IMG/VR virus record: IMGVR_UViG_3300037087_000760
Coordinates: 62,001-126,000 of that record
Length of the DNA: 64,000 bases
Reading direction: 5' to 3' (one strand)
Shown: one piece after another, positions 650-29,500 of the stretch
Numbering within the stretch: position 1 is the stretch's first letter
Layout: each line of letters begins with the position of its first letter
Notes under the pieces: model-generated
Database searches by the model: none
What the model saw: only the letters and a program-made list of their open reading frames with translations
What the model was told of the DNA's origin: nothing
Program-made: the position numbers and the translations under genes

Positions 650-1453
650 TTACTTATAATTAGGGATAATCTTGGTTAAATATTCCCATTCCTGAGAAAA
701 TATTGGTGGATCAACAACAACCCATTTACCATCCACTTTTACGATAGCACGGCCACGCTTTAAACCAGTTGGTATTTTATCCCAATTCTGACCTTTCTGA
801 AAAATCATTTCTTGTTGTTGTTTGGAATTTTTTCCATTTAATTGAGATCGTGAAGAATGTGGATATAAGGATTGTGCCACCGATGAAATACTATTTCTGG
901 TGGCATCTCCCTGACGCCAAACCAGATAGTTGATAACATCAGTCGGGGATGGAATGGTGAATACTCTGGAATCAAAACGAGCACCTTTATTTTTTTTAAT
1001 GAGTTTTATGACATCAGATAGTTTAACTAATCCCAATAATTCATCAAATTCCAATGAATTCATTGATGCCGCTAATAACCAAATATAAAATTCTTTATTG
1101 AATGTTTCAGTTACAATGGAAGCGGAATTACTACAAATCTTCTGAACAATTCCATCCCACCAAGGCATTGTTTTAATATCATCAAAATCGGTCATGATGA
1201 TAGAAATTTCATCCGATTGAACAAATCCAATTTTACAACCCTGAGCTTCTTCACAAAGAGCAATAGCGGATTGATTCATCATATTCACAAAATTTTCATC
1301 AAATGGTCTTTTGAACCTCTTAGTGAATGTGTGGAAAGCACGACCATCTACACGGATAAGAGTATATGTTCTCTGAGGGAGTTTACCACGAGTGACTTCC
1401 TCATAATTTTTCATTCTTTCCCCTAAAGAATCTTTCTCTGGTTTCTTACTCAT
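650..1453 (-). CDS. tRNA-His guanylyltransferase-like protein (Thg1/TLP)
   Basis: Motifs RVDGRAFHTFT, QSDEIS, FDSR, YLVWRQGDATRNS, typical of the Thg1 family. Confidence 0.92.
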   Translation of the reverse strand: MSKKPEKDSLGERMKNYEEVTRGKLPQRTYTLIRVDGRAFHTFTKRFKRPFDENFVNMMNQSAIALCEEAQGCKIGFVQSDEISIIMTDFDDIKTMPWWDGIVQKICSNSASIVTETFNKEFYIWLLAASMNSLEFDELLGLVKLSDVIKLIKKNKGARFDSRVFTIPSPTDVINYLVWRQGDATRNSISSVAQSLYPHSSRSQLNGKNSKQQQEMIFQKGQNWDKIPTGLKRGRAIVKVDGKWVVVDPPIFSQEWEYLTKIIPNYK

Positions 1454-1512
1454 AAAATATTTGTATTAATCAATCTAACAAAAATAGATTATTTATATGA
1501 ATAAAAAAAATT

Positions 1513-2193
1513 TTAAGCCAATAATTCTATTTTTCCTTTCAAAATATCTTTCCAACGACACGACTTTCCAGTAATGTGATCAGTTACAACATCTTCTCTT
1601 ATTCTATAAGTCCTTCTTTTTTGACCTCCCCTACTTCCATTTCCAATTTGGTCATTACGAAAATTCTTATTCTTCTCGTAGTTTTTCTTATCTTCGATTA
1701 CTTTTAGTTTCTCATATAATCTCTGATAAGCTATTTCTTCATTTTTTGTTTGGTCTCTTGTGTCTTGACATTTAATTTGAATTCCAGTTGGAATATGAGT
1801 TAATTGAACACAAGAGGCCACTTTATTCACATTCTGACCACCAGCTCCAGAACTACGGATATATTTCTTAGTTATCTCATTATAATTCAACTGAAGGTCT
1901 GTATTAACTTCTGGGTTCATAATTGCCACCGTTACGAAGCTGGTTTGAACCCTACCATTCTTTTCGGTAGGTGGTATCCTCACAAAACAGTGTGATCCAC
2001 TCTCATTACTAAAAAGTTTTTTTACTTTCTCACCTTTCAGTCAAATGGAGGCAAACCCATCTCGTTCTTCTACTTTATATGAGAAATCATTATTTCTACA
2101 CACTTTTGTATAGATGTTGGTTAGATCCTTAACCAATAATTTAGAGTCATTTCCACCCTCGGATGCTCTTATTTCTATTTTAATTGTTTCCAT
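1513..2193 (-). CDS. RF1-like peptide chain release factor lacking domain 1, with in-frame TGA at codon 51
   Basis: ATG at 2193 gives METIKIEIRASEGG...; in-frame TGA at 2043-2041; then ESGSH..RIPPTEKNGRVQTS (PxT motif) and SSGAGGQNVNK (GGQ). Confidence 0.85.
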
Positions 2194-2422
2194 TTATTCT
2201 TTTATTTATTTTTTTAATTATTACATTATCCCAATCTATCATCAACGGTTCTGGTATTTTTATTCCTTTACTGGTGAATTCATTGAGTATTTCCCGTTCT
2301 GTAAAACTCCCCTCAACAATACCATCGGTCCATTGTTGTAACCATAATCCCCAGCTCTTTTTACCCATGATAACACCCTTTAATATATTAGGATGATAAC
2401 TGGATAAATCATCCAATCTCAT
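2180..2422 (-). CDS. hypothetical protein (frame stays open upstream to ~2654)
   Basis: ORF track; frame extends upstream without an in-frame ATG. Confidence 0.5.
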   Translation of the reverse strand: MRLDDLSSYHPNILKGVIMGKKSWGLWLQQWTDGIVEGSFTEREILNEFTSKGIKIPEPLMIDWDNVIIKKINKRINGNN

Positions 2423-7005: not shown

Positions 7006-7344
7006 TCAAAAAACAAATTCAAATGATGGAATCGTTCTCCAATATCTTTCTTTTTTAACCTTTTTTTCCATCCACTGTTTTCTGTTTTTGGAAATAAGTT
7101 TCCAATTTGGATAACGAATATCCCAATATTCAACTCGATTGGAATAAAGTTTAGTTCCAGTAATTTTTCTTCCGACATAACCCCAACTGGTATATCCACC
7201 ATACCACTTTCCAGATCTATTTTCATTCTTGTGATAACCACAAAAAGAACAACGAAGTTTACCCTCTTGTTCAAGCATCTCTTTTCTCAAACGATTGTAA
7301 ACATACCTGTTATCGGTTGTCTTGTACTCAAATCTTGGTCTCAT
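7006..7344 (-). CDS. small basic Trp/Arg/Lys-rich hypothetical protein
   Basis: ORF with CSFC. Confidence 0.6.
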   Translation of the reverse strand: MRPRFEYKTTDNRYVYNRLRKEMLEQEGKLRCSFCGYHKNENRSGKWYGGYTSWGYVGRKITGTKLYSNRVEYWDIRYPNWKLISKNRKQWMEKKVKKERYWRTIPSFEFVF

Positions 7345-8812: not shown

Positions 8813-8817
8813 TTGTG

Positions 8818-8903
8818 TAGGACTACCCGGACTCGAACCGGGATTATACTTCTCGTCTCCACTTTGTAGGAGTGGGATGTTTATCCAGTTACACCATAGT
8901 CCT
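8818..8903 (-). tRNA. tRNA-Val(TAC), long variable region
   Basis: Loop CCTACAA. Confidence 0.82.
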
Positions 8904-9236: not shown

Positions 9237-9243
9237 TTTTGTG

Positions 9244-9328
9244 AGCCGACTGAGGGATTCGAACCCCCGCGGAGCCGAAGCTCTCCTGATTACAAGTCAG
9301 GTGGTATCAACCACTAACCGAAGTCGGC
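9244..9328 (-). tRNA. tRNA-Thr(TGT), long variable arm
   Basis: Loop CTTGTAA; variable arm GAGC-TTCG-GCTC. Confidence 0.88.
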
Positions 9329-11115: not shown

Positions 11116-11120
11116 TTTTG

Positions 11121-11203
11121 TACTGCGGACGGGACTCGAACCCGTACACCCTTTCGGGTCCAGATTGAAAGTCTGGTCACTTAGGCCATTTGTATACCGC
11201 AGT
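11121..11203 (-). tRNA. tRNA-Glu(TTC), long variable arm
   Basis: Loop CTTTCAA; variable arm ACCC-GAAA-GGGT. Confidence 0.85.
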
Positions 11204-27069: not shown

Positions 27070-27153
27070 GGTGATTGTAGTCCGTAAATGGAAGCGGGAC
27101 GGGTTGTGACCCCGTAGGTATACTCCGTGAGGGTTCGATTCCCTTCTTTCACC
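27070..27153 (+). tRNA. tRNA-His(GTG), encoded G-1, long variable region
   Basis: Loop TTGTGAC; C73. Confidence 0.75.
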
Positions 27154-27165
27154 CACCTAATAAAT

Positions 27166-27295: not shown

Positions 27296-27423
27296 GGGGG
27301 GATAGCTCAGTTGGTAGAGCATTCGGCTGGGTAGAACAATCATCATAATACAGTGCACACAGATTTATGATTGAAAGGTTCTACCGAAACTGATGGTCGC
27401 TGGTTCGAATCCAGCTCCCCCCA
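27296..27423 (+). ncRNA. tRNA with long hairpin inserted in the anticodon loop (intron-like)
   Basis: Canonical D and T arms; GGTAGAAC...GTTCTACC hairpin in the loop. Confidence 0.7.
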
Positions 27424-27548: not shown

Positions 27549-27678
27549 GGGGGAATAGCTCAAAGGTAGAGTATAGATTCTGAGAACAAATATTCCCTTT
27601 TAAGTTAAGTGGCGATGTATTCAGTTACTTCGGTTGTCTTAAAAACAAAAGATACGGGTTCGAATCCCGTTTCCCCCG
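27549..27678 (+). ncRNA. tRNA/Y-RNA chimera (TAA loop) with inserted arm
   Basis: Same architecture as 26936-27064, with GTTACTTC motif. Confidence 0.7.
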
Positions 27679-28791: not shown

Positions 28792-28873
28792 ATGGAAGTA
28801 GTTTAAATGTAAAACACCATCCGGCCAAGGGTGGAGATGTACCGCGGTTTAGGTTCGAATCCTACCTTCCATG
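28792..28873 (+). tRNA. atypical tRNA (loop contains GCC/CCA; G73), possibly Trp-like
   Basis: Good acceptor, D and T arms; irregular anticodon loop. Confidence 0.5.
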
Positions 28874-28878
28874 CAAAA

Positions 28879-28962
28879 GCAACCGTGGCCGAGAGGACAG
28901 GCTCCTGACTTTTAATCAGAGTGGAGAAATCCACAACACAGGTTCGATCCCTGTCGGTTGCA
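28879..28962 (+). tRNA. tRNA-Lys(TTT), long variable arm
   Basis: Loop CTTTTAA; variable arm GTGGA-GAAA-TCCAC. Confidence 0.85.
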
Positions 28963-28986
28963 CAAATCATCCATCTTCATCTGGAT

Positions 28987-29233: not shown

Positions 29234-29315
29234 GCAACATTGGCCGAGAGGTTAGGCTCCTGACTCTTAATCAGAGAACGAAAGTTCAACACAGGTTCGA
29301 TCCCTGTATGTTGCA
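29234..29315 (+). tRNA. tRNA-Lys(CTT), long variable arm
   Basis: Paralog of 28879-28962. Confidence 0.85.
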
Positions 29316-29319
29316 CAAT

Positions 29320-29390
29320 ACGAGTATGGTGTAACAGTAGCATAAAAGTCTCCAAAACTTTTGGTCGGGGTGCGAATCCTCGTACTCGTG
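29320..29390 (+). tRNA. tRNA-Trp(CCA)
   Basis: Loop CTCCAAA, G73. Confidence 0.87.
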
Positions 29391-29395
29391 CATAT

Positions 29396-29477
29396 ACGAC
29401 AGCTCATTGGTGTGACCAGCCGGCTCCAACCCGGTAATCCGTAAGGGTGGTTAGAGGTCCGAATCCTCTCTGTCGTG
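29396..29477 (+). tRNA. tRNA-Trp(CCA), atypical D arm and long variable arm
   Basis: Loop CTCCAAC, G73. Confidence 0.7.
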
Positions 29478-29500
29478 CTAAAAAGCGAAATGGTTGTAAT

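Follow-up and report, generated by a model that had tools for sequence, protein, structure and literature searches.

The gene analysed here occupies positions 1513..2193 on the minus strand of a 64,000-nucleotide stretch of viral DNA (the window, i.e., bases 62001-126000 of one 210,983-bp viral contig of 30.6% GC, IMG/VR record IMGVR_UViG_3300037087_000760) and it encodes an RF1-type class-I release factor (RF) without domain 1, the frame of which is interrupted at codon 51 by an in-frame UGA. This stop is conserved and kept as a stop among homologues, and purifying selection is found on both of its flanks. We propose, with a probability of roughly 0.55, that the UGA acts as a gate which, via programmed read-through, makes the production of an additional UAA/UAG terminator depend on how much termination capacity the infected cell has. 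Release factor genes gated by recoding are known from prfB and the RF1-type phage variant described here would be new, its mechanism being deduced from sequence comparison. No description of recoded RF1-type phage genes was found in the literature searched, which is no proof of novelty, and the finding suggests an undescribed way of tying factor synthesis to the quality of termination in the infected cell.

Read from the ATG at 2193-2191, the frame gives METIKIEIRASEGG... and then meets TGA 2043-2041 in the context ATT TGA CTG, after which the same frame (2193-2043 = 150, divisible by 3) continues to the true terminator TAA at 1515-1513. The complete recoded gene comprises 226 codons including the internal UGA. 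The conserved EIRA...GG motif starts at codon 7, it is preceded by six open codons, and the frame is closed directly upstream of the ATG. The start codon (2191..2193) stands in a 14-nt overlap with the end of an upstream open reading frame (ORF) of 80 amino acids at 2180-2422, and it has an A-rich leader and no Shine-Dalgarno (SD) sequence. In the mechanical ORF list the gene is split into 2041..2193 (50 amino acids) and a GTG-start ORF at 1513..1983. An earlier note, made from the sequence alone, had placed the beginning of the RF homology at ATG 2193, ahead of the listed ORF starting at 1983, with one in-frame TGA at 2043-2041, and this was confirmed by the sequence together with the domain matches. 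The N-terminal piece (codons 1-50, 2044..2193) matches Pfam PCRF 102-141 (E 6.4e-6), and the 175-residue C-terminal piece (codons 52-226, 1516..2040) matches PCRF 158-194 and the RF-1 domain (E 1.7e-30). As these matches are consecutive parts of one domain architecture, the colinearity of the two pieces is not due to chance. The gate codon itself (codon 51, 2041..2043, labelled column B) is the proposed site of programmed read-through, and it is followed by CTG (Leu, 2038..2040), which gives C as the +4 base and thereby a weak termination context.

The description of the factor as RF1-like, with a PPT tripeptide and lacking domain 1, likewise held in the profile comparisons. Among the NCBIfam models prfA ranked best (158.7 and 148.1 bits), followed by prfB (125.7), PrfH (73.5) and ArfB. 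The match to the prfA model begins at around position 105, showing that domain 1 is absent, and the prfA equivalog cut-offs of 400 and 423 bits were not reached; by these profile matches the gene is a truncated paralogue and not prfA itself. A profile of the family aligned best with the structure of Thermus thermophilus RF1 (residues 107-319, 172 bits), RF2 and PrfH reaching 111 and 92 bits. The PPT tripeptide (codons 74-76, 1966..1974, within ...FVRIPPTEKNGRVQTS...) is of the PxT type as in RF1 and it is invariant or nearly so in the family alignment, while the GGQ motif of peptidyl-tRNA hydrolysis (codons 118-120, 1834..1842, GGT GGT CAG) is invariant. The gene is the sole RF-domain gene of the contig. 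In an AlphaFold model of a close homologue (mean predicted local distance difference test score, pLDDT, 85.6) residues 1-50 form beta1, alpha1, beta2 and half of beta3 of the domain-2 sheet, and all gate columns of the family fall in beta2-beta3. The C-terminal piece comprises the remainder of domain 2, the GGQ-bearing domain 3 and domain 4. Because this piece alone lacks part of the decoding domain, a functional product would, by this model, need passage through the stop. Between the stop and the conserved NESGSH motif no ATG is present.

The nearest relatives of the gene are found in the uncultured huge phages LR756501, LR756502, LR745206 and LR756504 (45-63% identity). Three of these four carry TGA at the identical alignment column and three carry TGA at another column, namely LR756501 and LR745206 as a second one and LR756504 as its only one. 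The same TGA pattern was seen in IMG/VR loci of 63-77% identity, and all homologues whose terminator was inspected end in TAA. The earlier note had named the conservation of the TGA among the checks and a sense codon in all homologues as the outcome that would speak against recoding; the column of the window was found to be a stop in 28 distinct homologues of 44-79% protein identity (25 TGA, 3 TAG, 0 TGG), so that the latter outcome is clearly not what the homologues show. The Ile codon before the stop varies synonymously (ATT, ATA, ATC) and the stop persists. Pairwise ratios of nonsynonymous to synonymous substitution rates (dN/dS) were 0.06-0.27 upstream of the stop (44 codons) and 0.06-0.41 downstream of it (40 codons). 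At this column the +4 base is C (16) or A (12) and never T or G, and hence no TTA or TTG Leu codon follows the stop; in this genome 64% of the Leu codons are TTA/TTG and T is the first codon base in 23%.

A protein search restricted to entries of 96-306 residues yielded 437 relatives at E <= 1e-20. Among the matches listed (120 of 437) most have 134-175 residues, shortened as gene callers do at internal stops, and in some entries with about 225 residues the gate position reads W. Of these W entries, at least two are code-4 translations of TGA loci, which makes a W at the gate in a database entry unusable as proof of TGG. Public collections hide the recoding site in this way, as family entries (P0017, P0038 and probably many more) are truncated at the gate or show its TGA as W. 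The classification was made on an alignment of the full-length entries (A1) together with 80 further viral loci, giving 73 distinct PPT-type genes without domain 1. A recoding site was found in 67 of these short genes (about 90%), always within the same segment of about 25 codons: 58 contain in-frame stops, nine a +1 frameshift site and six neither. The in-frame gates occupy four alignment columns, i.e., the position of the canonical RF1 Trp (..kGW..; 29 cases), a position two residues on (7), one five further (8) and the column of the window (28), as counted in a 67-row alignment that includes the locus L160. The in-frame stop codons, tallied without L160, are TGA in 67 cases, TAG in three and TAA in none. 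TGG was found at none of the four gate columns in the short family, though it is one transition away from TGA. The earlier note had pointed to UGA-C as a leaky context, which did not prove to be a conserved feature: the +4 base across the family is A in 44 cases, C in 21, G in five and U in none (n=70), T making up 23% of first codon positions. The termination context of the gates is weak.

In the nine frameshift members CTT stands right before the stop (5 TGA, 3 TAG, 1 TAA) and the family sequence resumes in the +1 frame. The base after the stop in the CTT TGA cassettes is C or G, and seven high-GC members carry a GGAGG(G)-like element 2-3 nt upstream, as in CGG AGG GGT CTT TGA G. Some homologues carry two in-frame stops 8-13 codons apart, and many relatives have two UGAs per gene. 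In a maximum-likelihood tree a basal set is ungated and one 68-row group is gated in 67 rows, with one loss, and within this group the type and the column of the gate changed repeatedly. The family is nearly absent from 185,579 reference prokaryote genomes, where seven hits were obtained, all on contigs of metagenome-assembled genomes, the nearest being labelled Muribaculaceae and Bacteroidetes. A scan of metagenome contigs matched ordinary bacterial RFs through the GGQ pattern and added nothing to the family. Two loci (L160 and L161; IMG/VR 3300035208_002042 and 3300014204_000112) show two in-frame TGAs and in addition a frame break about 144 codons in, where the sequence goes on in a different frame after ...GAC TAA C; this is either an assembly error or additional recoding.

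Genome-wide, TGA keeps its role as a stop codon. The contig is classed as a provirus in IMG/VR, with a CheckV completeness of about 71%. Greedy ORF sets cover 87.5% of it under code 11 and 87.8% under code 4, i.e., with TGA as sense codon; TGA terminates 75 of 322 ORFs and TAA about 71% of the ORFs. Open extensions of at least 80 codons are not commoner after TGA (6 of 87) than after TAA (25 of 257). A genome-wide reassignment of TGA of the code 4 type was ruled out by coding density, stop usage, extension statistics and coding-potential scoring, and 50-kb pieces of three huge-phage relatives likewise show no TGA reassignment. Once all TGA-split frames had been inspected and scored for codon usage, the RF gene was the only one clearly split by TGA. 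In LR756502, further ORFs that seemed to be split by TGA turned out to be wrong-frame artefacts. A possible second read-through gene lies in the window at about 7008 (minus strand), where ORF 7006-7344 ends in a TGA beyond which the frame stays open for 92 codons. Codon usage is coding-like before and after this TGA, no ATG follows it, and neither Pfam nor PHROG gave a match. No other TGA-split frame of the genome besides the RF gene combines coding-like usage on either side with the lack of such an ATG, and a weak candidate lies at genome position 29989. No SD signal was detected upstream of 239 long ORFs (4% of starts vs 7% background), and the leaders are A-rich. Initiation of this type matches a Bacteroidota-type host, in which a frameshift stimulated by an SD element would not work, and the lack of SD usage may be the reason why AT-rich members use plain read-through and high-GC members the cassette.

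Judged from the sequences, tRNA-Trp(CCA), acting as a near-cognate tRNA and supplied by the host or by the phage, is most probably the simplest decoder of the gate UGA, and insertion of Trp fits as one gate column corresponds to the conserved Trp of canonical RF1. The contig contains 67 tRNA genes according to ARAGORN and 78 tRNA-like matches to the Rfam model. The phage tRNA-Trp(CCA) at 29320..29391 (plus strand), a candidate near-cognate UGA decoder, has a fully paired anticodon stem and U11:A24 in the D-stem, and A24 is the state of the Hirsh (G24A) UGA suppressor of E. coli tRNA-Trp (PMC13092985). It was shown that tRNA-Trp(CCA) variants, including one with a 4-bp anticodon stem, can increase UGA read-through in bacteria (PMC13092985). 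Two further plus-strand genes may serve as decoders, namely a sub-threshold tRNA-like gene with CCA anticodon and long variable arm at 29396..29478 and a CCA-containing tRNA-like gene at 28792..28874 whose anticodon loop, CGGCCAAG, has 8 nt and whose variable arm is long (ARAGORN 'gcca', Rfam tRNA 41.3 bits). The tRNA-Trp(CCA) of LR756501 (L243, ~204163-204333) has a C.C mismatch at the loop-proximal pair of the anticodon stem, leaving four paired positions, and it adjoins a tRNA-like gene of 91 nt whose loop has 8 nt and which ARAGORN calls 'Stop|Val (ttac)'. A canonical tRNA with UCA anticodon was not found by ARAGORN, by the Rfam tRNA and tRNA-Sec models or by a pattern scan in this contig, three complete huge-phage genomes and a 501-kb IMG/VR contig, permissive ARAGORN settings giving noise only. 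Exactly one tRNA-like element of this genome (11347-11452, minus strand) forms the hairpin UAGUC-GUUUCA-GACUA with the 6-nt loop GUUUCA and resembles two cloverleaf tRNAs with UUUUCA loop in LR756502 (L240, ~434062-434135 and ~435101-435174); genes of this kind are possible unconventional decoders and a weaker lead than tRNA-Trp(CCA). Around the stop no conserved RNA structure was detected (RNAalifold, 0 pairs in 26 sequences), and the local fold of the window's own gate (z = -2.3) is not conserved.

In the mechanism that we propose, most ribosomes would terminate at codon 51 through host RF2, releasing a harmless peptide of 50 residues, and a fraction would read the UGA with a near-cognate tRNA to give the complete factor of 225 residues. 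Since read-through and RF2 would be rivals for one A site, slow termination at UGA should give more of the full-length factor and fast termination less. UGA read-through in Bacillus subtilis amounts to 6% in the wild type vs 19-54% in prfB mutants (cited in PMC7918605), and U at +4 reduces read-through (PMC5289835). Relatives would build the same logic otherwise, with an in-frame UGA at one of three other columns, occasionally with UAG, or with a prfB-like +1 cassette. We infer that the decoder is tRNA-Trp, that RF2 is the competitor, that the purpose is regulatory and that the factor reads UAA and UAG; a basal leak that is modulated is more likely than an all-or-none synthesis of the factor. 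Regulatory read-through in competition with RF2, as postulated in the earlier note, is the most economical explanation, and it is strongly reinforced by the prfB-like frameshift cassettes of the homologues: as these stand at the same place, an output that varies inversely with RF2 activity would be the property under selection.

Several points weigh against this mechanism. An RF1-type factor cannot relieve a shortage at UGA, so that the benefit of sensing RF2 would be indirect, by backing up termination at UAA. Although most gates are TGA, the family also has in-frame TAG gates and TAG and TAA cassettes; as these stops are also read by host RF1, dependence on host RF2 only is not the whole story and an RF2 sensor does not generalise to the family. 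The residues which confer third-base specificity in RF1 are changed in this clade, where the Gln181 position is Val in this factor (Val, Ile, Leu, Ser or Asn across the family) and the His193 position is Gln both here and across the family, which renders the specificity of the factor uncertain. In members with two UGAs a simple leak would give a very low yield, which hints at a more efficient decoder, and a suppressor tRNA could lie in the part of the genome missing from the record.

The foremost alternative is that the factor senses itself. In analogy to prfB, a factor with broadened or shifted specificity, either UGA-reading or omnipotent, would read its own gate codon, so that abundant factor would stop its own synthesis at codon 51 and scarce factor would let ribosomes read through. 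We regard this as a tentative alternative, clearly less probable than competition with RF2. It would agree with the prfB-like cassettes of the homologues, with the altered Gln181 and His193 positions and with the predominance of TGA, which resembles prfB, where 98.6% of motifs have TGA (PMC12421855). Moreover, the cassettes of closely related members use TGA, TAG and TAA together with the same RVPPTE loop, which is easiest to understand if the factor reads all three stops. On the other hand, the tripeptide is PxT, the profile is clearly nearer to RF1 than to RF2 and the in-frame gates are never TAA; to our knowledge, PxT factors do not read UGA. The specific form of this idea, a minimal release factor with broadened, possibly omnipotent, stop recognition that regulates its own synthesis through whichever stop forms the gate, appears doubtful on the sequences at hand, and it would explain why otherwise identical cassettes of close relatives contain UGA, UAG or UAA. 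If true, this would be the first bacterial-type factor that naturally reads all three stops and the first self-regulating RF outside prfB.

It is unlikely that the gate is instead a code switch of a single gene, in which a dedicated phage tRNA decodes UGA efficiently and the factor appears only after the tRNA programme of the phage has been switched on (temporal gating). Such a tRNA might come from one of the three CCA tRNA-like genes, two of which are non-canonical, from the GUUUCA-loop element, or from a UCA tRNA gene located in the 29% of the genome that the record lacks. The large tRNA complement, the UUUUCA-loop tRNAs of LR756502, the four paired anticodon-stem positions in the tRNA-Trp of LR756501 and the two UGAs per gene in many relatives are in line with it, and RF1 is part of the code-change modules of phages described by Borges et al. 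(bioRxiv 10.1101/2021.08.26.457843). However, neither this genome nor the three complete huge-phage genomes yielded a canonical UCA tRNA, no other gene clearly uses an in-frame TGA, an efficient suppressor would also read through the 75 TGA-ending phage ORFs, the RF1 of Jade phages is encoded in standard code, and the homologues with frameshift cassettes need no special tRNA. Less probable still is a passive dose limiter, i.e., a leaky stop that keeps a potentially toxic factor at a few percent without sensing anything. Such a limiter would accommodate the harm that RF over-expression does to B. subtilis (PMC12421855), the early position of the gates, which keeps the abortive product short, and the lack of a conserved stimulatory RNA structure; yet a weak start site would do equally well, and any stop-codon gate is unavoidably sensitive to RF activity. 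That gates arose repeatedly at four columns, switched between read-through and SD-stimulated cassettes and were lost once in 68 rows argues for a property specific to stop-codon recoding and hence disfavours the limiter. The remaining explanations, namely a pseudogene, a sequencing error, a selenocysteine codon or a protein made in two pieces by termination and re-initiation, are together highly improbable. One in-frame stop is what usually betrays a pseudogene, yet a pseudogene is ruled out here by a stop shared with dozens of diverged loci and by dN/dS far below 1 on both sides. A sequencing error is excluded by the conservation of the stop in relatives and by identical k-mers, seven peat-metagenome runs from several samples and studies containing 100% of the sampled 31-mers of window positions 1400-2400; peat is the source environment. 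UGA can encode selenocysteine, but there is no conserved hairpin, the gates occupy four columns, Cys occurs once at the column of the window and no tRNA-Sec above the cut-off of the Rfam tRNA-Sec model was found. Re-initiation might use the codons that follow the stop (ATT, ATA, CTG), which are rare near-cognate starts; against this, several members have CTA after the stop, double stops 8-13 codons apart would give unusably small fragments and the frameshift homologues make one chain.

Directly downstream of the RF gene lies a gene for a Thg1-like protein of the tRNA-His guanylyltransferase family (650-1453, minus strand; Pfam Thg1 E 1.9e-28), which represents a further tRNA or translation function in the same block and is not syntenic in relatives. 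The gene neighbourhood as a whole is not conserved among relatives and synteny among them gave no functional clue. The window also contains tRNA genes of 83-87 nt with anticodons of normally short tRNAs (Val UAC, Thr UGU, Glu UUC, His GUG, Lys UUU/CUU and Trp CCA), located at 8817-8903, 9243-9328, 11120-11203, 27071-27154, 28879-28963, 29234-29316 and 29396-29478. Each of them adjoins a tRNA of normal length whose anticodon is identical or synonymous. In at least the CCA gene and the two Lys genes the body is clearly type-II-like and bears a long variable arm, and the D-loop of the Lys genes is of the GGCCGAGAGG type. If these long tRNAs were recognised for charging by that arm, in the manner of SerRS or LeuRS, mistranslation would result. 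Furthermore, tRNA genes of about 128-130 nt with a 50-70-nt insertion in the anticodon region are found at 27296-27423, 27549-27678 and genome position 155311-155439 (L047 112-240), with Rfam tRNA scores of 56.7, 47.0 and 30.5 bits; the insertion is intron-like or an extra arm, and the anticodons are not readable with confidence.

Regulated recoding within an RF gene has hitherto been a textbook peculiarity of prfB. The phage RF1-type family, whose gates take at least two mechanistic forms, employ each of the three stop codons and evolved at sites that have no relation to that of prfB, constitutes an independent natural experiment on the sensing of termination capacity. It offers compact read-through and frameshift cassettes, from organisms with and without SD usage, for reporter work, and it offers a way into the question of why large phages encode a termination factor at all. 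The internal gate is also the likely cause of systematic mis-annotation, most of the entries being truncated at the gate or translated in code 4.

Among known systems, PrfH (RF-H, paired with RtcB2) is similar in size, with about 200-230 residues, a GGQ domain and no domain 1. It differs in that the gene of the window reaches 73.5 bits with TIGR03072 (cut-off 166.65), retains the PxT decoding loop and has a Thg1-like gene and not RtcB directly downstream, the rest of the genome not having been searched for RtcB; we know of no recoding for prfH. Natural UGA read-through by tRNA-Trp shares with the present case an in-frame UGA in weak context and, as proposed here, its low-frequency reading in competition with RF2. 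An example is the A1 read-through protein of the RNA phage Q-beta, where read-through extends a complete protein; in the gene described here no functional protein would be made without it, and what the gene encodes is a termination factor. Phages that use code 4 or code 15, whose code-change modules contain a suppressor tRNA and RF1/RF2 (Borges et al., bioRxiv 10.1101/2021.08.26.457843), resemble this case in that an RF1 encoded by large, tRNA-rich phages is tied to the use of UGA as sense codon. In contrast to these, TGA is not reassigned genome-wide here, and the contig yielded no tRNA with UCA anticodon; Jade phages keep the module in standard code and recode their lysis genes (Borges et al.), while here the RF gene itself is recoded. 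RF1 and RF2 were listed among huge-phage genes by Al-Shayeb et al., without comment on internal stops (PMC7162821).

A close counterpart is the +1 site of prfB (SD-like element, CUU UGA C), which is alike in having a premature stop early in a class-I RF gene, a weak context and a competition of bypass and termination. The architecture by which prfB senses RF2 consists of an SD-like element, CTT and TGA (PMC12421855), and nine homologues share this design with a GGAGG-like element, a short spacer, CTT, a stop and continuation in the +1 frame. Unlike prfB, the RF gene at 1513..2193 continues in frame 0, has AUU instead of CUU before the stop and no SD-like element upstream of 2043, and its product is of the RF1 type (PxT) and without domain 1. 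In the 2025 survey by Prince et al., which covered more than 12,000 bacterial genomes, prfA showed no programmed frameshift and none of 8,164 prfB motifs had TAG (PMC12421855), whereas the cassettes of the phage family include TAG. As the gates lie in domain 2 and the prfB site in domain 1, the gates arose independently of the prfB site.

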